Assembly: GCA_015680685.1 (NCBI GenBank)
Contig: MNCI01002242.1
Location: 275,042 to 339,041 of the forward strand
Direction of reading: 5' to 3'
DNA: 64,000 nucleotides
Origin: Gnetum montanum
Lineage: Eukaryota > Plantae > Gnetophyta
In this document: piece by piece, positions 7,401 through 34,600 of the stretch
Position numbering within the stretch: position 1 is the stretch's first letter
How the letters are laid out: the number at the start of each line of letters is the position of its first letter
Made by a program: the position numbers and the translations under genes
Notes under the pieces: model-generated
Databases searched by the model: none
What the model was told of the DNA's origin: nothing
What the model saw: only the letters and a program-made list of their open reading frames with translations

Positions 7401-8853
7401 TCTATATCTTCATCTTTTACCAAAAGCAACATCTCACATTATTTGAAACATTATTTTTATATGTTCATCTACTATATTTAGTTTCAACATTCAACATCAA
7501 ATCCTACATTAATCTTGACTTTAATTCTTAGGTGAAATCTACTTTTCAAAGTACAACATCAATTTTTCTTTTGATGTCTTGCATAAATATCTCTTTTAAA
7601 GTTTGATGTCATTTTTCATATCAATTATCCACATGTTGATTCTCCTATTTACAATCTTGTAGATTGTATGGATCCCAATGCATCATTTCTTCATGATCTA
7701 TAAGGCATTTTGGGTTATCCCTAAGTGGAAAGGGGTTGAATTGGCTTTTCATTGGATTTAGTTAAAGCTCTTCCAACTATTATTGCAATTAGGTACAATA
7801 TGCTCCTTACTTGCATTTGGGTAATTTGGAAATCTTTTAAAAGATTCATCTTCTCTATAGAACAACTATTCTCCATATAGCAATGCTAGCTCTTTTTTTT
7901 TATCTCCATACAGAGATACTTACTCTCTTTTTTAATTCTCTTTCTTTCTTCCTTTTGATACATTTGTATCTACTTCATGCTATTTTCTTCACACATGGAG
8001 AGTCATTCAAATTTGGGTCAACATGCTAATCTAATTTAATCTTTCCTTGTTAGCTTTTGAATTTGTAATGTTCTTATTAAATCTACATCAACCACATGCA
8101 TTATAGAGAGAATGGGATAACACAACTCCTCATCTAACATCTTTGATCCCTAATCCATTTCTCAAGATTTTCATAATAGGTTTTATATTCCTTTTTCTCT
8201 ACCATTCTAATTTGTTCATTTTAGTTTCTTATTTCTGGCATTGTACTAGATTTGATTTAAGCATTTATTTTTTAAAGTTTAGCATGGAATGGTTTAGATA
8301 TATTTTTTCTTTATACGCTTTGTTTCATCTCTTTTTTGTCAGTTACATGCATATTTTGACCTATTTCATTTTACATTACACAAATATTCTATTTATTTAT
8401 ATTTTTTCAACTATTCCATACATGTTATTTTTCACATTATACTTGCTAATGTTTGGCAAAAACATTATCTCAAGTTGCCAAATTTTTTCAATAATCTAAA
8501 AGTCCTATTTAAATTTAAGAAAAATATATTTTTATTAAAAAATTTAGTGGTCATGTGATTTCATGGCTCAGTTTCGTGATAGGTTATGTCAAATCATGTA
8601 TTACAATGATTTTTAAAATAACATCTTTTTGGTACTCAAGGGAGAACCTCTGTGAAATTAATGTCATTTCTAGGATTCCGTCTCTACTAGTGTTTATACA
8701 CTATTTTCTAAGTTTTAATGAAATGTTATTTTAAAAAATTAACATGTTGATTCTTTGTGACTTTTATGCTTCATTTGAATAGAAAATTCTCATCTTCTAT
8801 TTCATGTGTGAACCTATTTGTAGGAAAAACCAAAGCTCTAGTAACAGCTTTGT
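4435..8853 (-). mobile_element. Decayed Ty3/gypsy chromovirus (Tekay/Del-like)
   Basis: Degenerate Met PBS (plus GCTCTAGTAACA ~8835-8846), RT/RH/INT remnants, PPT (plus TTCTTCTCCATCTAA 4618-4632) abutting the 3' LTR start at 4617. Confidence 0.75.
4640..7330 (-). pseudogene. pol: pol remnant: RT, RNase H, integrase, chromodomain
   Basis: RLCIDY, KNKYPLP, YEFMDLLFRLTNA, VRSFLGLVGYYRRLIKEFS, HP.MDGQVERINQ; C-terminal VKVLW.....ELTWE.E chromodomain. Confidence 0.8.
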
Positions 8854-9423
8854 TGTGACATCCCATCCCTAGATGTCATGGAAAACATAAAATATACGTT
8901 ATGTTAGACATTAGGCATAATATGATAATGTAGAAAATGTCAAATATATGTAACATTTGACATTAAGCGTAACAAAAATAATAGGGAAAATGCAGAAGTA
9001 AAAAGAAAAGAATGCTTTATTGATGCGGAATAGTATATCTGGATCATGCTTTGAGAGTATTCCTTATTTTCTTCCTTTGGTATCTATCACTTAGAGGCAA
9101 TCCAGCACTACAACCATAGTTAGGCCTACAACCAACCAAAAGATATGGTCATTCCTCCTCTTGTCTGCTTCACCCATACCCTGTTACTTACCTTTGCTTG
9201 CTTTGAAACTGCATGCTAATACTACCTCTAATGCTTGGGTATAAATACCTTTGGTCAAACTCCCAAATGTTACCTTGAGAGATACTTTTATGATTACAAC
9301 ACATCCTTTTGAGTATTAATTACAACTCCCCTTTTGGATCTTGTTACAATAATGATAACACTTATTATGAAGAGGCACCGTCTATATTATGTAGTAGCAC
9401 CATTTGGAAATAGGGACATTACA
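8854..9423 (-). repeat. 3' LTR of cargo element
   Basis: Plus TGTGACATCCC...GGGACATTACA; collinear with 14209-14826, 18285-18850 and 22262-22834. Confidence 0.9.
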
Positions 9424-9438
9424 ATCTACCTCTCTTAG
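9424..9438 (-). other. Polypurine tract
   Basis: Minus CTAAGAGAGGTAGAT immediately before the LTR-initial TGTAAT. Confidence 0.65.
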
Positions 9439-9829: not shown

Positions 9830-11038
9830 TTAAGATACTTCCTTATCTTGATCAACCTTAGGAATTAATGGAAGTAATTGTAGTTCTATCATAAGTGGTA
9901 TATGATTGGATGGTCTTGTTCGTTGAGATGGAAAGGCTTGATCCTACTTCTTCTCAACTTCTTCTTTAGAAATTAACTCTAGTAACTTGATAACTTGGAA
10001 GAATTAGATATCATACCAAATATAATCCAAGGTCTTAATGAAGAATGTTGTTGACACATCTTCATTAATTGTGGTAGATTAATTGTTGAACTATGGTTCT
10101 TGATGAGTACTATCCATCAACATCATCTGTTTCTGAATTCTAGGATATGATTTATCTATTAAATATTTCAAGTAAGTAGAATATGTACTGGTGAATGGAA
10201 TTGTATGTTTAATTGATGAGAGCATCTTCTTCAAATTAGGTTTGTCTTCAAAGGATTCCTTTACATATCCATATTTTAAGAATTGATGAACACTACTTCC
10301 AACTTTCACATTGAAGTCTGCACAAAGGAAAATTGATACTAGATTGGTATGTCTTAGGAATAACTTATTCTTCAAACTTTCCTCTATTTTCTTAATAAAG
10401 TATGCTCCTTGGCATAGTCTAACATCTAGACATGTTGATTTGGTAATTAAATGTGTGTTAACAATGCATACATATCCTTCTAATAACTTGATTTTTAGTA
10501 TCATTGACAAAGCTATATTGCTTCTTTGGAACATTGACCATTCTTTATTTCCCATGATTTGAAGTTTTGGGAGTTTAAAAATCATATTTTCTAAACTCCA
10601 TTCAAATCTTTATACTCATTCAAATTTGGCTTCTTTATAAAATATTATGCAACCATCCATGTTATGATTTCTGTAATAGGATAATTTGTATAGCTCAAAA
10701 GAAGAACTTCCACAAAAACCTTTTTTCTTGTAAATACCTTTGTATCCCATATTTTCCATGTTCGATTAGAATTGATATCAAAATTCCCATGGCAAGACTT
10801 CTCATATGCATAAAACATCAGCATCCAAATCTTATAACTTTGCTAAGATGCATGGGTATCGATACTCATGCAAGTTCAAGACTCACAGTGGACATAATAG
10901 ATGTTGTATCTTGCAAGCTAGGCAACTTGCTAGCACATTATATGTTACCACTTTCATTCTTATTCTTGGATTCTCTTCTAAGCCATTACTCTTTATGGGT
11001 ATCATACACCTTGTCAAAGTGAGATTATGACTCTTCAT
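9830..11038 (-). pseudogene. CCR4/nocturnin-family (EEP) deadenylase-like gene; one frame, 11 internal stops, no frameshift
   Basis: Manual translation gives, in canonical order: KVVTYNVLA, CPL*VLN...YR, DADVLCI*EV, MGYKGIYKKK, DGCIIFYKEAKF, NIALSMIL, CIVNTHL, DVRLCQ, FLCADFN, GSSVHQFLKYGYV, HTIPFTSTYS, EP*FNN, FIKTLDYIWY, LLELI, FPS...PSNHIPLMIE. Includes track ORF 10091..10585. Confidence 0.9.
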
Positions 11039-11978
11039 GTTATTTTTTCATATGCTTTGATTGCAACAAAAATTGATATAAATCTTCTTAACCATTCTGG
11101 TTCACCAACTGATTCTTCAACTAACCTTTTTAGTAATAACTAGCTACATTAGCTAAACTCTTTAGTGACCCTTCTTTCTATCCTTCTTAGAACACTGACT
11201 CTGGTAGTGTAATAAATGGCACATCAAGGGATAGTAATCTCAAGACTATTTGCAAAGATTAAGCACTTAGTCTTAAGTTCTAGATGATTAAATTTTCTAG
11301 TCCCAATAATTAATTATTAAGCATGATTAGCTAGCCTAAGTTATGGTCTTTTAAGGCACAATTTATGATTTCATAGAATTATTAGGTACTTGGATAATAA
11401 ATCTAACCTCATCATTTAGTTTAGAGGGTTCAAAAATATTAGGAATGACTATTCATATGTTAGAAATGGGCATCATATGCTCACGTTATACTAAAATTAA
11501 GTCTCTAAGGGTATAGAGGCACCATGTTTGGCAAAGAGTGAAAACTAATTTCTGGGACTTCATGGGGTATATTTGACTTCACAATTATGTCTAGAAGGTT
11601 GAAATTTTTAAGAAACCACTCCTTGTTTGTTGAAAAAGGCTTCTAGAGATAAAAGTTATGGCTTTTGCGATCTAAAACCTTTGGCATAGAAAATGAGACT
11701 TCTTGAGGTCACTTATCCTAGCACTACTCCAAAATGAGCATGCTTAATTACAAATTTTTCATCCCATCTATTGGAAAAACATCAATTTTAATTTCTTGTT
11801 AAATTTTTCTTCCTTTGAATATTTAAATTTTCCCATCGAAACATTAATTTTAAAAATTTTTCATTATTTGATGGTTTGAGAATGTCCTTCAATTGCTTGG
11901 AACATTTTCATAACTAACAAAAAAATTTCTGGTGCCTGAAACTATTGAAGGACGTAGCTTTTTTCAATGCCACCAATG

Positions 11979-12185
11979 TTTGCGAGTGTCTGAGGAGGTG
12001 ATCATTTCTAGCACTAGCGGTGTTCACGGTTGTCAAAGGAGGCAATGATTTTTGATGCTGGTAGTATTTATGGGTGCCAGAGAAGATGATTATTTTTGGC
12101 ATTAATAGTGTTTATGGGTGCCAAAGAAGGTGACTTTTGTCGTTGCTAATGTTGTCCATGGGTGCTAAAGGAGGTGGCTTTTTCT
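11979..12185. repeat. Degenerate 44-bp tandem repeat, ~5 copies
   Basis: Units start at 11979, 12023, 12067, 12111 and 12155 (consensus approximately TTTATGGGTGCCAAAGGAGGTGA..TTTT). Confidence 0.75.
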
Positions 12186-12199
12186 AGAGTAGTTTGCAA

Positions 12200-12704
12200 A
12201 CACGTAATACAAAAAGGTAGATGAAGCAGCTATGAGGTGAAGGGTCTATGAACATGCAGAGAAAGGGTTCAGTGCAAGTAGAGCAAGGTTTAGGTGTTGC
12301 TAGTCTAGTCTCTCCAACGGGATAAGCAAAGCATGGATAGGCTAGTGTTGATAGCTTTTGGCTTTGAGTTCCATCAACAGTGACTCGTGAACACCCCATT
12401 GCCTTATGCAATAGCACCTACATCTGTAGTGCCCACACCACCATCATCTAGGGTAGTCAATTGAAGAATGTTTTTATGATCATACCTATTCCCATGCAAC
12501 CATGGCCTTCATTATTGACCTTGATCATGCACTCTTTGGCCTTGTCAGATGCTACAAAGATCACATGCAAGTTAACATTGCTGGCCAATGGTCTCCTTAC
12601 AAAGCAAAACATGGTTTTATATGTCCTTGGGTAGGATATGATACCACCATTACATGCAATTCTTTTACACCTTCACCTTTTTCTTTCTACTTCTCTACAC
12701 CCAT
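12200..12704 (-). pseudogene. Captured 5' fragment of a family-1 UDP-glycosyltransferase
   Basis: MGVEK*KEKGEGVKELHVMVVSYPTQGHIKP, frameshift, MFCFVRRPLASNVNLHVIFVAS, later ILQLTTLDDG and LLMELKAK. Matches the UGT N-terminal H.....P.QGH.NP signature. Left boundary approximate. Confidence 0.75.
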
Positions 12705-14195
12705 CTCCCCTATTATCTTCAATTCCAATGGACTAAGACTCTTATTTTACCGTATCAACATAATCAACTAAAAAAAATGTGGTATTGGTATTTTGTGGCT
12801 AAGGCTAGTAGTTGTGGGTGCATGGTGTGATGATGAAGAAGGTTTGCATGATTTTGGCCCTTCTTGTAGGGCTGCATAGCGCCTCCCAAGGCTAGTGAAG
12901 CTAGCTTGTAGCTTGGCCTAGTCTAGCCAGGCCACAAGGCAATATATATGTAAAGAATATATGTTACTTTGTACTTGCCTTGGTGGTTAGCAAAGTGGAT
13001 CTTAAGATTGTTGTTTAATAATTAAGAAGTCGTGAGTTTTATTTCAACCCCTAAAATTTATGACTTTTTGTTATAACTTTTTAATATTATTTTATTCTAC
13101 GTTGCCTTGGTGAATGATGTGGTGGTTCGGCCAATGATAGGATGTGAATTTGATTTGGGTAAAGGGAGATTCTACACTTGATTCTTGATCCTAAAATTTT
13201 GAATTTTTAAAAATAAATAATTTAATAATGTTTTATTTAATTATTTATTGTTAATTTTTTTAAAATGCAAACATAACAAGAAAATTAAAATGATAATGTC
13301 TCCCAAAATGTGAGTCCAATTGGGACAAAATTTGTACCATTAGAAACATCTCGAGGAGTACTATGTGTTGGATATGGTTTTAGGATCAAAAACTATGTTA
13401 GATTTTCATGATTTAAAAGGATTGAAACAGCTTATTTTTTGAATTAACATTCCTAGGCTAACATATATAGGTAACATAATAACTTACATATGACTTGGAT
13501 TTTATTGTAAATGATGTACCAACCCTAGAATAGGAATATAATATTTATACCTTATAATTTGACAAGTATGATGGTTATACCTTCTCATATTATGGTTATA
13601 CCCTGATGACATACTGAGAAGATTATGACAACATCATTCACCAAGTATTGGTTTCCGTGGAGGGATGAGACAATCCTATGGATGAGTTGATTTCCCTTAA
13701 CTTATTAATACCTAGGTCTTAGGTATGGTGAATAATACCAAATTACAAAGATTAAGCACTTAGGATAATGAGTTTCAACAAAACAAGATCAATTTAGGTC
13801 ATGGTTGCTAACCTTTTGGGAGAATCTTAATAATGACCTTAATCAATTAACATTCTAGCATCACTATAAGATGGGTAAGAGTTACTAGGATAGGTGTGTG
13901 ATTTTCTTACCAACATCTCTTGTAATTGATGAATCTTAATAAAGTGTACTCAAATATTCCTTGATCAATGATATTCATAAATAATTTTTTTGGTTGGTGG
14001 GATCTATGCCTCTTGTAGATGCTTGATCCACTGTTCATGAAATCAATGAAACAATATATTTTAGCTTACATAGATCATCTTAGACATGTGGCACATCTGG
14101 TGGTGGTCCATGATGCTTTCTAGCTCTTGGCTCCTTGGTTAATCATTAGATTGTAGTCAGCCCATGGTTCTAAATGGTCCTTGATTCATGGTTTT

Positions 14196-14206
14196 CTCTG
14201 ATACCA
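14196..14206 (-). other. Primer-binding site, initiator tRNA-Met
   Basis: Minus TGGTATCAGAG, 2 nt from the LTR end. Confidence 0.9.
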
Positions 14207-14208
14207 AA

Positions 14209-14826
14209 TGTGATATCCCATTCCCAAATGTCATGGAAAACACCAAATATACATTATATTAGACATTAGGCATAAGAAGATAANTACCAAATATACATTA
14301 TATTAGACATTAGGCATAAGAAGATAATGTAGAAAACATCAAATATATGTAACATTCGACATTAAGTGTAAAGAAAATAATAGGGAAAATGTAGAAGAAA
14401 AAAAGAGAAGAATGCTTTATTAATGTGAAATAGTATATCTGGATCATGTTCTAAGAGTTTCCTTAGGGTTTTCTTCCTTCGACATTTTTTCCTTAGAGGA
14501 AATTCATCATTGCCACCATGGTTAGGCCTACAATTGGCTAGAAGGGATGGCTAGTCCTCTTCATTTCTTGCTTCACCTAGCACCTGTGACTTGCCTTTAC
14601 TGGCTCTGCAACTCTATGCTAATATGACCTCTAATGTTCAATTATAAATACCTTAGGTCAAACCTCCAAAGGTCAACTTCAGAGCCATGTTTGTTATTAA
14701 AACATACCCTTTTGGGTCTTAATTACAACTCCACTTTTGAGTTTTGTTATGATAATGATAACACTTATAATGAAGAGGCACCATCTTTGCTATGCAGCAA
14801 CACCATTTGGGAATGGGGATATTACA
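14209..14826 (-). repeat. 5' LTR of cargo element
   Basis: Plus TGTGATATCCC...GGGGATATTACA. Shares the GATAATGTAGAAAA variant with the 8854 LTR but not with the solo LTRs. Contains an N at 14284. Confidence 0.9.
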
Positions 14827-16990
14827 TCTATGAGATCATAGTCATTTCGGCAATAACAACAATGGTATCATCTTCTAATTTTAGTTTCTTCAAGATTTAT
14901 AATGTCATGGACCTAAGGAGAAATTAGAGATTTTCAGAAGGAGTAAGCTTGAAAGACTACAAAATGGCCTATACCAAATGAAAGCTAGGCTACCTACTTA
15001 CACTTGATATGTTCAAGCTCATGGAATAGTATGAGTAAGCTAATGATTTACCACCTTTCCTTCTTAATCTAGATCATCCAATCCAACTAGATAATAAGGA
15101 AGCTAATAAAATCAATAGGTTTATTATGGAGTAGGAAAATATGTAACAATGCCTACATCTATAGATTGAGAATGCTAGGATGAAAATCATTCTCGACCAA
15201 CCTCTTAGTTCTCATATTATTCTTAAAGGAAGGAGAGGAAGAGGAGGCTTCAAATCACATATTCATCTGCTAGGAGAAGATAAAGAACAATCAATAGGAG
15301 ATCTTGACAAAAGAAATTCTCTATGATATTATATCCATAACATTAGCATCACAACTACTTCAAATAATTTTTTTAGATCTATTTCCCCTACAACAAAACC
15401 ACTTAGCCTTCCTAAAAGCTCTATTCCTTCTTACTATTTTTTCCCTCCCAATAATGATAGTAATTCCCACTTCATATTTCAATCCTATATTCCATCTTTT
15501 GGATCCACATATTTTATTCCTCAACTATAATCTACCATACCTTCTTTTCAGTCCATTCCACTTTCTACTTCTATCACTCTACCACTATTCAATCTTTTTA
15601 AACCTGTTAGCATACTTTCTTTTCCAATATACCCACCCACCTCAGTCTTATTGGGTATACTTTATTCTACAACCTTAGGATCCATTCTATATGTACATCC
15701 TCCTTCAACACCATCACCTACTACCATAGCTTAATATACCCTTTATTCTTCTAGAAGAAATCAACAACTATTAGCATTGCTCAACGATATGATTTTTTAT
15801 CTCTAAAAAATTAAAGATAAAGTAGCAAAGATGCTAAACATATAAGGGAATTCTATTATTTTCTTGAATTGGATCTTGAGTGATCCTATAAGCTTTTCCA
15901 TTTCTTTGATAGTTCTATTGAAAGAAGATTCATTGCTATATTTCATAAACTACCATGGTGAAATAGGGGACCCTATGAATCATGTGGTTACATTTAGAAA
16001 TAAATACATGATTCTAGTTCCTTACTCACACATTGTGTTAAGGTGCTCTTCCAACTCTCTTTTTGGAAGAGCTTTATAATGGTGTAGGTCCTTAGTATGT
16101 GGTTTAATTACCTCTCTAGAGTAATTATTGGTAGCTTTCATTGAGCACTTTAAGTTTAATGTCCCGCAAAGCACAACTATCATGTCTTTTGTTTTCGTTA
16201 AGAAAGCTCCAAATGATCCTATTAGTAAATGTATTTCTTGATGGATAACATCAATTAAAATGCCATATCATTTGAAGTAATATCATTAACAGGATATTTT
16301 AAGATATGATAATTGACTACATTAAGAAGAGGATGGCTTGTCCTAAGCCTCATTCTCAAAATGATGCTTTCCTAGCTTCTAGACATAATGAAGAAGCTAT
16401 TATTTAACATGGTTATTAGAAGTTTTTGTCAATCCATAACAAAGCTAACTAGGTTGTAAAACAAGAGAAGGGACAACCAAACTTTTGAGGTATTTCTTCT
16501 TTTTCTAAGGAACAAAACAATACTTCCTAAACTACTTCATCTTTCACTTAGCAACACAGATCTTAAATGAGTAGAAATTAGTACACCAAGATACCTATGA
16601 AGTACACCCTACATTTGAATAATGTTCTTAAGGATGATACCTTATGAGAAACTAAGTCTCAAATCAAGTGGGAGCATGCTATCGTCACATTCTATGGATC
16701 CTTTTCAAAGGCAAGAAGGTAACCCTGAGATACCTAAGTGACATAACTATTGGAAATATTGCTATTATTATGAGACTACTAGACATGACATAGATAACTA
16801 TAAGAATTTGAAAGATGACATCTAGGATCTCATAGATAATTACAAGATAGTGGTGAAAAGTGATCCACACATGATGCATTCAAATAATCAAAAGCTAGAA
16901 GTGTTTCAGAATCCCTTGGCAGATGGAGGTGCCATTTTGTTATAGGAACATCTCTTCTGATTCCCTTTGTTCCTCCCCTATGTTTGTGTC

Positions 16991-17892: not shown

Positions 17893-18284
17893 AGCATCCT
17901 CAATAGTCATCGTCCCAATCTTAGAATTCTTATATGATTTATTTGTCTAATTATGTTACTACATCATCAAGGACAAAATATTCTTCTTTTTCTTCCTATT
18001 GTATTCATGCTATCAATCCCATTGTTCCACTTCCATTACTTAATTCATCCATCCTTCCTATTATCTCTTATTCCATGCTACACTAAATCCCAAAACATTC
18101 CTTCACTTACTATGTTTTAGATATTAACTCATCCTTTTCCATCATTGTAAGTAAAAATTCTTACCTATAGCTAATAGACCAATGAGTCACAATTAGACAA
18201 GTAGAAGGAGTAGGTTATTGATGCATAAAAGCAACCTTCTAAGACATTAAACAAGGTTTTTGTTTACAACAACAATAAGAGACT

Positions 18285-18850
18285 TGCCATATCCCCATTT
18301 CCAAATGATGCTGCTGCATAACAAAGATGGTTCCTCTTCATAACAAGTGTTATTGTCATCGTAACAAGACTGAAAAGGACATTTGTAGTTAAGAGCCAAA
18401 AGGGAATGTTGTAATAATGGATGTGTCTCTTGAGATAACCTTTAGAGGTTTGACCTAAAACATTTATACCTAGACTTAGAGGTCATGCTAGCATGGAATG
18501 GTGGTAAGGCATGTCACGGGAGCCTAGTGAAGTAGGATAGGGAGTGGATTGGCCATCACTTCTAACCATTTATAGGCCTAACCATGGTGGCAGTGTTGGA
18601 TTTCCTCTAAGGGGATAGATGTTGAAGGAAGAAAACCCCAAGGAACACTCTCAAAGCATCATTCAGATATTCCATTCTATATTAATAAAGCATTCTTTTC
18701 TTTCTCTTTCTACAGTTTCTCTATTATTTCCTTTACACATAATGTCAAATGTTACATATATTTCACATTTGGTATATTCTCTTCATATGCATAATGTCTA
18801 ATATATCGTATATTTGACGTTTCCATGACATTCATGAATGGGATGTCACA
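18285..18850 (+). mobile_element. Solo LTR of the cargo-element family
   Basis: TG...GGGATGTCACA, reverse-complement homolog of 8854-9423; perfect TSD AGACT (18280-84, 18851-55). Confidence 0.9.
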
Positions 18851-20443: not shown

Positions 20444-23400
20444 TTAGTTTCCTCTTCTTCTTCATCAATTTACATAAGAGTAGTTCATCTGCTGGTTTCT
20501 AGATACTTTCCCTAGGATCTACACACAAAATTAAAGAAAATATGTTATTAATCTTATTTACCATGTCAATGAGATGAAATAAAATAGCTACCTAAAATTT
20601 TTATTCTTACACTATGTCTCCTTAGATATCTCTAATATTCTTTGTTATATCTCCTTCAAGCTTAGATTGGTTTTGTCTAGTGTATTAAAAGCTAAACTTG
20701 GAATCCTTGATAGGATGCTTGGCTATACTTCTTAATACATTTTTTATTCTTTTGGTATAATTTCACCATCATTCTACTCTTTTGTAGCTTCCTCTTGTGG
20801 CCCTCTCTATTGTTCTTCTAGTATGGTAATTACCAAAATATTTGCAAAATCTTCAAATAGCTCTTCTAACTTGGTCTATTTGATAAACATACTTCTTATT
20901 TCTTTATTCACAAGAAAAATTTTATTCTTCTTCAATAGCTTAAGGAACTTTCTTTTGTATCACTACTTATTTGTTTGGTGCTTCCTAGCCTACCTCTTTA
21001 ATGCTATTGTAGAGTTTTTAAGACTTTTCATGGAATGAGTTATTGCTAAAGCTGATATATTTCACTCCATTAACACTATTTAAAACTATAGAAATTTTTT
21101 CCTTTCTCTTCAATATGCATGGGAAGGATGGTTGTACTTGATCATGTTATTGCTCCTTATTTTTTCTTCTAGGAGCTTTACCTAGTCAGAAAAGATCCTT
21201 ATTTATTGATCATTTTCTTCCTTCTTTTTGTGTGCTTAGTTCAAGGAGTCTGGGAGCATGATATTTGTGTTGGATTATTCTATAGCTAATACTTCCATAT
21301 CCTTGTCATAAATGAGGCTTGTGCTTATTTTTTCTGTATCTACTCTCTCTATTGCCAAATCAACATTTACTGTTGGATCATGAAAGTTACTTATTTCTTA
21401 TGTATCTTAATCTTTATTTTTGCATCATAAATGAGAGAACATTAGATTTTGTATTACTAACAATGAATAATATTCTACAATAATAATGTTGAAATTGCTC
21501 ATCTCTTTCCAGAGAGGTCAATTTTAGCTTTCTCTCCATATCATCTACTAACCCTTCCAACATCATCTACTTGTCTTTTACATAAGCCCATATTTTTCTT
21601 TTAATCTATGAAAAAGAGAAGAAAATGGTTAACTATTTTTTACATCTATAGAATTATTATGTAATCTTTGATATGACATACATTACACTTACCATTTGAT
21701 GTAAAAAGATCTGAGCTTTTTATCCCCTTTATCCTTTTGCAAATGTCTGAATAGTTCAAAATTAATTTTTTTGATGGAGAAACATTTGTAGAAAGTAGAG
21801 GTAGGATCTCCCATTCTTGAGGCTCATCCCTTCTTCAGCTCTTGCTCTTCTGATCTTCTTGTCTTGTTTTATCATGGTTTAAAATAAAGAGGTTATAAAA
21901 AGAAGTTAAACTTTCTCTATTCCCTTCATTTTCCTCTAATGAAAATAAGTCATCCAAGAAATCCATCTCCTCTATTATCATATCCTCCTTTTGACCTTTA
22001 GAGATCAAAGGAAGGTTCGAATGTAGCTTCTTTGCTTTCCATTTCATTGCTCTTCTATTGGAAGTAGCTTTTTCAAAATAACCAAATGTTAGTCTCATGT
22101 CATTCTTTGTCCACATTGAAACCAAAAATTATGCTATGTTAATAATACTTAGTAGATAGTAGATTAGAAAAACTTACTTGGTCATTCCTCTAGCTTCTCT
22201 TGGGAGACCTTTATTTCTAAGATCTTTTTAAGGAGATGTCTTCCTATTTAGAAAGAGGTTTTGTGACATCCCGTCCCTAAATGTCATGGCAAACATTAAA
22301 TATACATTATATTAGATATTATGCATAATAAGATAATATACCAGACATCAAATATATGTAACATTCAACATTATGTGTAAAGGAAATAATAGAGAAAATG
22401 CAAAAAAAGAAAGAAAAGAATGCTTTATTGATATGGAATAGTGTATTTGGATCATGCTCTAAGAGTGTTCTTTGGGATTTTCTTCCTTTGATAGCTATCC
22501 CTTAGAGGTAATTCAACATTGCCACCATGATTAGGCCTATAACTTGACTAGAAGGGATGGCCAATCCACTTCCTATCTTACTTTACTTGACTCTTGTGAC
22601 TTGCCTATACCTGCTTCACCACTCCATGTTGGCACAACCTCTAAGCCTAGGAATAAATGCCTTAGGTCAAACCCCCAAAGATTACCTCAAGAGACATGTC
22701 TGTGATTACAATGCATCCTTTGGGTCTCAATTATAACTACCCTTTCAAGTCTTGTTATCATAATGATAACACTTTTTATGAAGAGTCACAATCTTCATTA
22801 TGCAATAACATCATCTAGGAATGGGGATGTTATAGGTTTCCTTTTTCTTGAAGGTCATCCCTTATCCATAGTTTCATATATGCTTTCCAAAATTCCTTTC
22901 TTTCCTACTTATTTATCTCTATTTATTTATTTATTTTTGTGAGCTTCCTAAATGCTTACTGAAATTGATAAATCCATCTCTTCCTTAATCTTTGACACTA
23001 ATGTCAAAGGACCACTACCCTTGATGCTTTAAGTAGAAATTCTAATTATTAAGTGTTGTCATAATGGAGATCTAAAGTTCATTTCAAAAGTAACATTAGA
23101 TTACTTTTCTTTGTCTTCAATAAATAATGTTTTCAAAACCCTTATTAACTCATAATAAAATCCAAAATATAGTTGCTTACTTACCATCTTCTTTTTTCCC
23201 TTCTTGTCCTCTTTGGGTATCTTGTCCATTTCTTTAACCATTTCTCAAAAGATAAATAGTGTTTAGTTAGCTATTATTTCTTGGGATATTGCCCCATATA
23301 GCCAGTACAACTACCTAGAGACCAACTTCTATTTTTGACTTCTCTTATTATAGAATATTTTTTCAATGAACAAAGAAAATAATTTCTTCAACTCTTCATT

Positions 23401-33339: not shown

Positions 33340-34600
33340 GTAGAAACACTTTAAATAAAATGCATTAAAATTTCTATGTAATTTGTTTCCTTCGAAATTA
33401 GCAAATTTGTAAACATTAGGGTCAATAACATTTGTGAATTGATATGGACCTAACCACATAGGAGAAAAATTATTTTGAGAACCATTTTGACTAGAAACTC
33501 TATCTCTCTTAAGGACTAAATCACCTACTATAAAATATTTAGTTGCATATTTCTTATCAAACCATCTTTTAATAGTTTGTTGATGATTAAATAAGCTTTC
33601 AACCGCTTTGACCCTTTAAAGTTTTATATTTTAAATGTCATATGTGTGGGAAATTAAGTGTTCATCAATTGGTAAATAATTTAAGAAAAAATGATATGTA
33701 GGAATTTGCAAATTTATTGGTAATATTGGTTCTTGTCCATATACTAAATCATATGGTGTAACTTTGATTGACTCTTTATAACATATTCTATCAACCCATA
33801 CTACCCATTTTAATTGTTCATGCCATGTACATGGATTTTGAGTTATCATCTTTTTCATTCCATCTAATATAACTTTATTGGATGATTCTGCAAACCATTT
33901 CCTTGGAAATAATATTTGGTGATAACTTTGACAATAATATTATGCTCCCTAGCCCAATTTGTAAACTCTATGGAGATGAAGGCAAGTTCATTATCAACTA
34001 CTAAAATGTAAGGATATCTATATCTAGAAATTATATCATTTTCTAAAAAGTGAATAGCTTCACAACATATTGCAATTCTAGTTGTTTTTGCTTCTAACCA
34101 ACGTGTGCAATAATCAGTAGCCATTAAGATAAACATATGTTGAGTTGTTGATAGTGTGTTACTCACTCCTATAAAAACTAAAGTCCATTGTGCAAATGAT
34201 CTAGTTTCTATTATAGGTGGTAAGAGAGCTAAACTTTTGGAATCTTTTCCTTTATAAATTTGACATTGTACATAAGTTTTAACTATATTGTAAGCATTAT
34301 TAATCATAGTAGGCCAGTAGTATCTTGCTCTTATGATTTTATGTACTAACAAACAACATCTTATATGTCTTTCCTCATGTAGTTGCTTTAAACTGTTGTT
34401 AGCTTGTTCTTGGTCTAAATATTTAAGATATATCCCTTTGATTATTTTTTAAAAATAACTCACTACTAATTAAAGTAAACTTAGAATAATTAGATACTAA
34501 AAGCTTTCTTTGATATCTAGGTAAATCTGAAGGACAATGATGAGAGGTCAAATAAAACCTAATATCTCCATGCCATGGATCATGTAATCGGCTAGGATAG
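33340..34600 (-). pseudogene. Integrase remnant
   Basis: KIIRARYYWPTM, QCQ, ILMATDYCTRWLEA, VVDN, QGNG, TPYDLVYGQE, GPY. Confidence 0.9.

Follow-up and report, generated by a model that had tools for sequence, protein, structure and literature searches.

Anatomy of the LTR element

A structurally complete LTR element of 5,973 bp was located at positions 14826-8854 on the minus strand of the window (the whole 64-kb stretch of DNA that was analysed), and the decayed frame of a CCR4-type EEP nuclease lies between its two LTRs. The features of the element, in its own sense, followed by two further LTR copies, are given below:

14827..14831, minus strand: candidate 5-bp target-site duplication (TSD), upstream copy, ATAGA in element sense
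14209..14826, minus strand: 5' LTR (copy B), 618 bp, with TG...CA ends and a 44-bp internal duplication
14196..14206, minus strand: primer binding site TGGTATCAGAG, 2 nt after the 5' LTR, the sole such site in the window
11039..14195, minus strand: 5' internal region, in which neither gag nor pol nor any other protein similarity is recognisable
9830..11038, minus strand: CCR4-type EEP nuclease pseudogene, comprising the linker and the whole catalytic domain, with 11 internal stops and SDH changed to SNH, and without the N-terminal zf-MYND-like part
9425..9436, minus strand: polypurine-like tract AAGAGAGGTAGA, one base before the 3' LTR
8854..9423, minus strand: 3' LTR (copy A), 570 bp, at a K2P distance of 0.227 from the 5' LTR
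8849..8853, minus strand: candidate TSD, downstream copy, ACAAA
18281..18850, plus strand: LTR copy D, with no adjoining primer site, outside the EEP element
22262..22834, minus strand: LTR copy C, preceded by a purine-rich tract and with no primer site, outside the EEP element

The LTR sequence starts with TGTAAT and finishes with TCACA, and the two LTRs that bound the element, A and B, are 81% identical. The primer site TGGTATCAGAG is complementary to the 3' end of the plant initiator tRNA-Met, which is used by many plant LTR elements. The two TSD candidates, ATAGA and ACAAA, match at three of five positions, and both mismatches are transitions. The EEP frame had been described in a sequence-only reading of this DNA as lying in sense orientation upstream of a PPT and a 3' LTR, and this is the arrangement observed, with the frame preceded by a non-coding leader of ~3.2 kb and ending ~390 bp upstream of the purine tract and the 3' LTR. 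Since the LTRs, the primer site and the purine tract are kept, all the cis signals are present in the element. No gag, protease, reverse transcriptase, RNase H or integrase was found in the 4.8-kb interior (14208-9424) by Pfam on its stop-free pieces or by tblastx against the remainder of the window and the metagenome loci, and the EEP domain was the only similarity returned. Having no gag-pol, the element would have needed an autonomous partner that copied it in trans.

Cassandra, an element of the LARD/TRIM type, has LTR parts that derive from 5S, whereas no 5S-like sequence was detectable in the window copy; searches for 5S rRNA or any other Rfam family and for tRNA genes returned none in the window, the element or the LTR. 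A UDP-glycosyltransferase fragment was considered at 12200-12704 and rejected, as the Pfam and PDB sequence searches were empty on both strands. Runs that faintly resemble UDP-glycosyltransferase motifs can be picked out by eye at 12187-12443 (minus strand) and 12452-12631 (plus strand), where Pfam and PDB gave nothing. An N base stands at 14284, inside the 44-bp internal duplication peculiar to LTR B, and a further single N base of the assembly is found at position 1762 of the window.

The nuclease frame and its relatives

Read on the minus strand from 11038 to 9830, the EEP frame opens with ATG and its translation comprises 402 codons and a terminal TAA. It contains 11 internal stops (four TGA, five TAA and two TAG) and no frameshift; the in-frame stops disqualify it as an open reading frame for a protein, and its longest open piece is of 172 residues (10609-10094). 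When 47 CCR4-like proteins were compared with the window by tblastn, one HSP was obtained per protein, the best extending from 10951 to 9857 with ~30-32% identity over ~365 residues and E values down to 4e-37. A single uninterrupted HSP indicates that the frame has neither intron nor frameshift, and the earlier description of an intronless, frameshift-free minus-strand frame therefore holds. In the script-based comparisons, the frame was read through its stops as X.

In the MAFFT alignment, the motifs VVTYNVLA, DADVLCI*EV, DGCIIFY, NTHL, CADFN, TLDYIWY and SNH were all placed in conserved catalytic columns, in agreement with the order of EEP motifs noted from the sequence alone, and the final motif reads SNH in the window frame where the kin have SDH. 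The catalytic set of N, E, D, N-x-H, D-x-N, D and D-H is thus complete except for the last aspartate. A stop codon occupies the residue directly before the catalytic Glu. Of the stops, only number 52 stands opposite a W that is invariant in the canonical proteins; number 79 (TGA) is opposite an invariant Q, from whose codon two steps are needed. Pfam scored no family on the five stop-free pieces of the frame, and a word-indexed protein search with the 172-residue piece found no match. No remnant of an N-terminal zinc finger was detected upstream of the frame in any reading frame, and no poly(A) remnant was found after it.

Against PDB, the 172-residue piece matched ANGEL2 best (1.2e-5), followed by PDE12, yeast Ccr4 and CNOT6/CNOT6L. 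An exhaustive phmmer search of the same piece against 1.84 billion cluster representatives returned 26 matches, none above 38% identity and the best with an E value of 3e-9; those that are named are Ccr4/CNOT6, and nine of the top ten relatives passed PF03372 (Exo_endo_phos). The nearest relative, P0002, matched only the CCR4 group in PDB, with CNOT6/6L at 2e-37. Judged by these comparisons, the cargo is a CCR4-group EEP domain, as had been claimed at the outset, and not a LINE endonuclease, its PDB kin being ANGEL2, PDE12, Ccr4 and CNOT6L only. Like ANGEL2, nocturnin and PDE12, the cargo has an EEP domain without a CCR4-NOT docking module; however, the full-length nearest relative P0002 scores best on CNOT6/6L, so the likeness to these three would be one of architecture and not of descent.

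The best-matching group consists of P0002, P0003, P0004 and the P0001/P0031/P0053 cluster, and these were obtained only from ENA, JGI and Logan assemblies. A divergent CCR4-like clade was delimited that contains P0053 (the ORF of metagenome contig L003), P0003, P0004, P0054-P0057, P0060 and P0002, none of whose members was found among named, annotated proteomes. Clade members are 54-60% identical to the P0053/L003 ORF, and the canonical plant proteins named 'carbon catabolite repressor protein 4 homolog 1/2', from Closterium to angiosperms, are ~40% identical to the divergent group. Within the clade, the N-terminal loss is progressive, with the zinc finger lost first and then the whole N-terminal half; some members are EEP-only, and P0002, P0056, P0057 and P0060 begin near the same linker as the window frame. 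Metagenome contigs L001-L004 (35% GC) carry an intact, intronless ORF of 537 residues with a weak zf-MYND-like match and an EEP domain, and no frame of the window resembles the L003 ORF before its residue 163. These four contigs, which come from different JGI samples, are circular permutations of one ~9.9 kb unit that may reflect a tandem duplication or an assembly collapse. Two features were located in L003:

L003 6973-8586: CCR4-like gene of 537 residues, intact and intronless
L003 2254-3225: decayed RT/RNase H, on the strand opposite the CCR4-like gene

The L003 gene lies among decayed retroelement pieces and is not visibly inside an LTR pair. A repeat in L003 (1-308 and 9901-10216) was considered as an LTR pair and rejected, having no TG..CA ends and no primer site on contigs that are circularly permuted. 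The locus is intronless like the window frame but has no visible LTR element and no DNA in common with it, and neither LTR nor internal DNA similarity was found between the element and the metagenome loci L001-L005.

A maximum-likelihood tree of 42 rows was constructed under LG+C20+F+G4 by PMSF. The window sequence joined the divergent CCR4-like group with support of 82/85, outside the canonical clade, and the window and the divergent group together were sister to a tight canonical streptophyte clade. The end branch of the window is very long (3.65), and long-branch attraction is a possible cause of its placement. The AU test rejected a grouping of the window with the angiosperm CCR4-1 clade (p 0.006), this group having been named after inspection of the tree and involving long branches. 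At the 18 columns where the consensus residues of the two groups differ, the window agrees with the divergent group in six and with the canonical group in one, and its identity to the divergent group is 32-37%, against ~26-30% to canonical CCR4-1/CCR4-2. The divergent clade supplies the best matches by every measure and shares group-specific residues with the window, although the frames of its members are open and that of the window is dead. These comparisons give moderate support to a grouping of the cargo with the divergent CCR4-like clade. The placement outside the canonical clade and the AU result also sustain the earlier view that this is not a recent retrocopy of canonical CCR4a/b.

Compared with streptophyte CCR4-1/CCR4-2 (the Arabidopsis CCR4a/b type, with a zf-MYND-like part and an EEP domain), beside whose clade the tree sets the window, the same motifs occur in the same order and the linker before the domain is recognisable. 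In contrast to these proteins, the window frame lacks the whole N-terminal half including the zinc finger (PF15801), and its copy is intronless, lies inside a transposon and contains 11 stops.

Age and decay of the copy

LTRs A and B differ by a K2P distance of 0.227, and a divergence of about 0.23 indicates that the copy is old. Substitution rates of plants are 1.3e-8 or 7e-9 per site per year, and with these borrowed rates the LTR distance would correspond to an age of roughly 9 to 16 million years. Half of the LTR distance and the mutation spectrum of the LTRs were then applied to the EEP frame, and this gave an expectation under neutral decay of ~7.5 stops and ~75% unchanged residues. The frame contains 11 stops and has kept 45 of the 65 invariant columns (69%) that were defined on 26 streptophyte CCR4 proteins. 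Both the stop count and the loss of conserved residues fit neutral decay since about the time of insertion, and the copy is therefore dead, a neutrally decayed pseudogene. The private changes of the LTRs comprise 68% transitions, and C>T plus G>A account for only 37%; the proposal that the stops are mostly of C>T/G>A origin is not established from one copy.

The overall identity of the frame to its kin is 30-37%, compared with the 69% of invariant columns that are kept, which suggests that the sequence was still a constrained nuclease domain at insertion. It probably retained a nearly full conserved core at that time. If the observed identity of 33-37% is divided by the expected retention, the inserted sequence would have been ~45-50% identical to the divergent group, which is close to the internal spread of that group (54-60%). 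The LTRs of the element carry five private indels in 1.19 kb, four of them frame-breaking, from which ~4-5 frame-breaking indels are predicted for the 1.1 kb of continuous EEP similarity (9857-10951), whereas none was observed there. The rough Poisson probability of this is 0.01-0.02, and simple neutral decay is no explanation for the absence of a frameshift.

Origin of the cargo

We lean towards the view that 14826-8854 is an old, dead copy of a non-autonomous LTR retrotransposon family whose passive cargo goes back to the captured mRNA of a divergent gene of the CCR4-like type. In an ancestor of the family, the processed mRNA would have been acquired while reverse transcription was under way, through template switching or transduction; the cargo would then have been amplified passively with the element, which would have replicated in trans through an autonomous partner. 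The source of the mRNA would be an already divergent CCR4-like lineage of EEP 3'-5' poly(A) nucleases, derived from streptophyte CCR4a/b, and not canonical CCR4a/b itself, and the N-terminal MYND-like part may have been gone in that source lineage or may have been lost on capture. Any protein of the master copy would have resembled Angel, nocturnin or PDE12 in being a free-standing nuclease. The sequence-only reading had proposed that the sequence evolved as a TE-borne gene, with a possible effect on poly(A) metabolism or silencing, and here its argument falls short of a decision, as the same data fit the capture of an mRNA from a divergent host paralogue just before a burst of the family.

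Gene capture by plant LTR elements is established, with Bs1 and the surveys of sorghum and rice as examples (PMC13317346, PMC7264820). As described there, Bs1 of maize and other gene-transducing plant LTR elements carry host-derived coding sequence in sense, as the present element does, and Bs1 holds pieces of three host genes, in none of which the ORF is full-length (PMC13317346, PMC7264820). The window cargo differs from that of Bs1 in being one whole catalytic domain that is deeply diverged from any known gene. Non-autonomous elements of the LARD/TRIM type, of which Veju is an example (PMC13317346), likewise have LTRs, a primer site and a purine tract without gag-pol, and mobilisation in trans is a further trait that they would share with the window element, but they have no protein-coding cargo. 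Full-text literature searches, together with look-ups in reviews of extra ORFs in plant LTR elements and of gene capture, did not turn up any plant LTR element described with a CCR4 or EEP cargo. Gene capture of this kind is a known mechanism, while a CCR4-type cargo is new.

The nuclease may instead have served the element family as a functional gene and been maintained by selection during transposition, as a free-standing deadenylase, as an RNA-end trimmer or as a decoy, and the window would then hold a dead copy of a counter-defence or RNA-processing factor encoded by the transposon; we consider this unlikely, though it has several observations on its side. The nuclease is the sole cargo, lies in sense and presents a complete catalytic domain from an ATG. 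In spite of its deep divergence, 45 of 65 invariant columns are kept, close to what post-insertion decay alone would leave, and no frameshift is seen although the LTRs are burdened with indels. Among the nearest kin are open frames that consist of the EEP domain only and, like P0002, begin at the same linker as the window frame; the divergent clade is absent from named, annotated proteomes. A selective stake is also plausible. The MYND-like part of plant CCR4 docks to CAF1, and a trimmed CCR4 without the docking half could compete with host CCR4a; a decoy that lacks this CAF1-binding N-terminus would interfere with the shortening of retrotransposon RNA tails by host CCR4a. Arabidopsis CCR4a binds the RNA of LTR retrotransposons, shortens its poly(A) tail directly and suppresses transposition (PMC12501189). 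Against a working gene, the non-coding leader of ~3.2 kb ahead of the frame is poor for translation, the residue pattern is equally expected if the sequence was freshly captured from a divergent host gene, and the decay of this copy is fully neutral. A more elaborate form, which we hold to be rather less probable again, is that of a many-copy non-autonomous LTR family whose masters encoded a working, trimmed nuclease of the CCR4a lineage as their only protein, kept for interfering with or replacing host deadenylation of the element RNA; such a family may join a wider intronless CCR4-like clade (P0002, P0053 and kin) that travels with, or derives from, transposons in several plants.

Captured pieces in plant LTR elements are usually fragments of ordinary genes, and the piece found here is a whole catalytic domain from a deadenylase lineage for which restraint of LTR retrotransposons through RNA-tail shortening was recently demonstrated (PMC12501189). 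It appears to have been amplified across a genome by a non-autonomous family that had no other cargo. If the copies show selection or expression, this would be the first plant retroelement with a piece of the host RNA-decay machinery and would provide a direct handle on the contest between transposon and deadenylation. If they show neither, the passive capture that we favour would still be a clean case of the transduction of a whole domain that can be dated, and would mark an unannotated CCR4-like clade that evolves fast.

Four copies of one LTR family are present in the window, namely A (9423-8854), B (14826-14209) and C (22834-22262) on the minus strand and D (18281-18850) on the plus strand. 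Copies C and D are each ~80% identical to the LTRs of the EEP element and are probably solo or truncated; no gag-pol remnant or autonomous partner is recognisable beside them, and the 64-kb window holds one EEP copy. The K2P distances of all six pairs among A-D range from 0.227 to 0.30 in a star-like pattern, and these near-equal distances suggest one old burst of the family. The A-B distance is not below the distances of A and B to copies C and D, so the two are assigned to each other on the basis of the primer site, purine tract, orientation and TSD. Alternatively, a host CCR4-like gene may have left an ordinary processed pseudogene here, which happens to lie between two unrelated solo LTRs of a common family; in favour of this, the four copies stand at nearly the same distance from one another (K2P 0.23-0.30), so that A and B cannot be shown to be a pair, and the TSD match is just three of five. 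We regard this as very improbable, because the sole primer site of the window and a purine tract lie precisely at the inner edges of B and A, respectively, the frame is oriented like both LTRs, both TSD mismatches are transitions, and no poly(A) tract follows the frame. A remnant of the LINE-type (APE-like) endonuclease of a non-LTR retrotransposon is scarcely credible, for although LINE endonucleases share the EEP superfamily and one relative has a faint match to Exo_endo_phos_2 (E 0.084), the significant kin are all CCR4, nocturnin, Angel or PDE12, every named relative is a CCR4 protein, no LINE or APE nuclease occurs among the PDB matches of the 172-residue piece and of P0002, and no reverse transcriptase follows the frame.

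The window as a whole is a heavily decayed, transposon-rich region with few long ORFs. Only two ORFs of at least 150 residues were found in the whole 64 kb, one of which, at 33864-34352 on the minus strand, is an integrase-like ORF of 162 residues whose best relative is 48% identical and carries PF17921.
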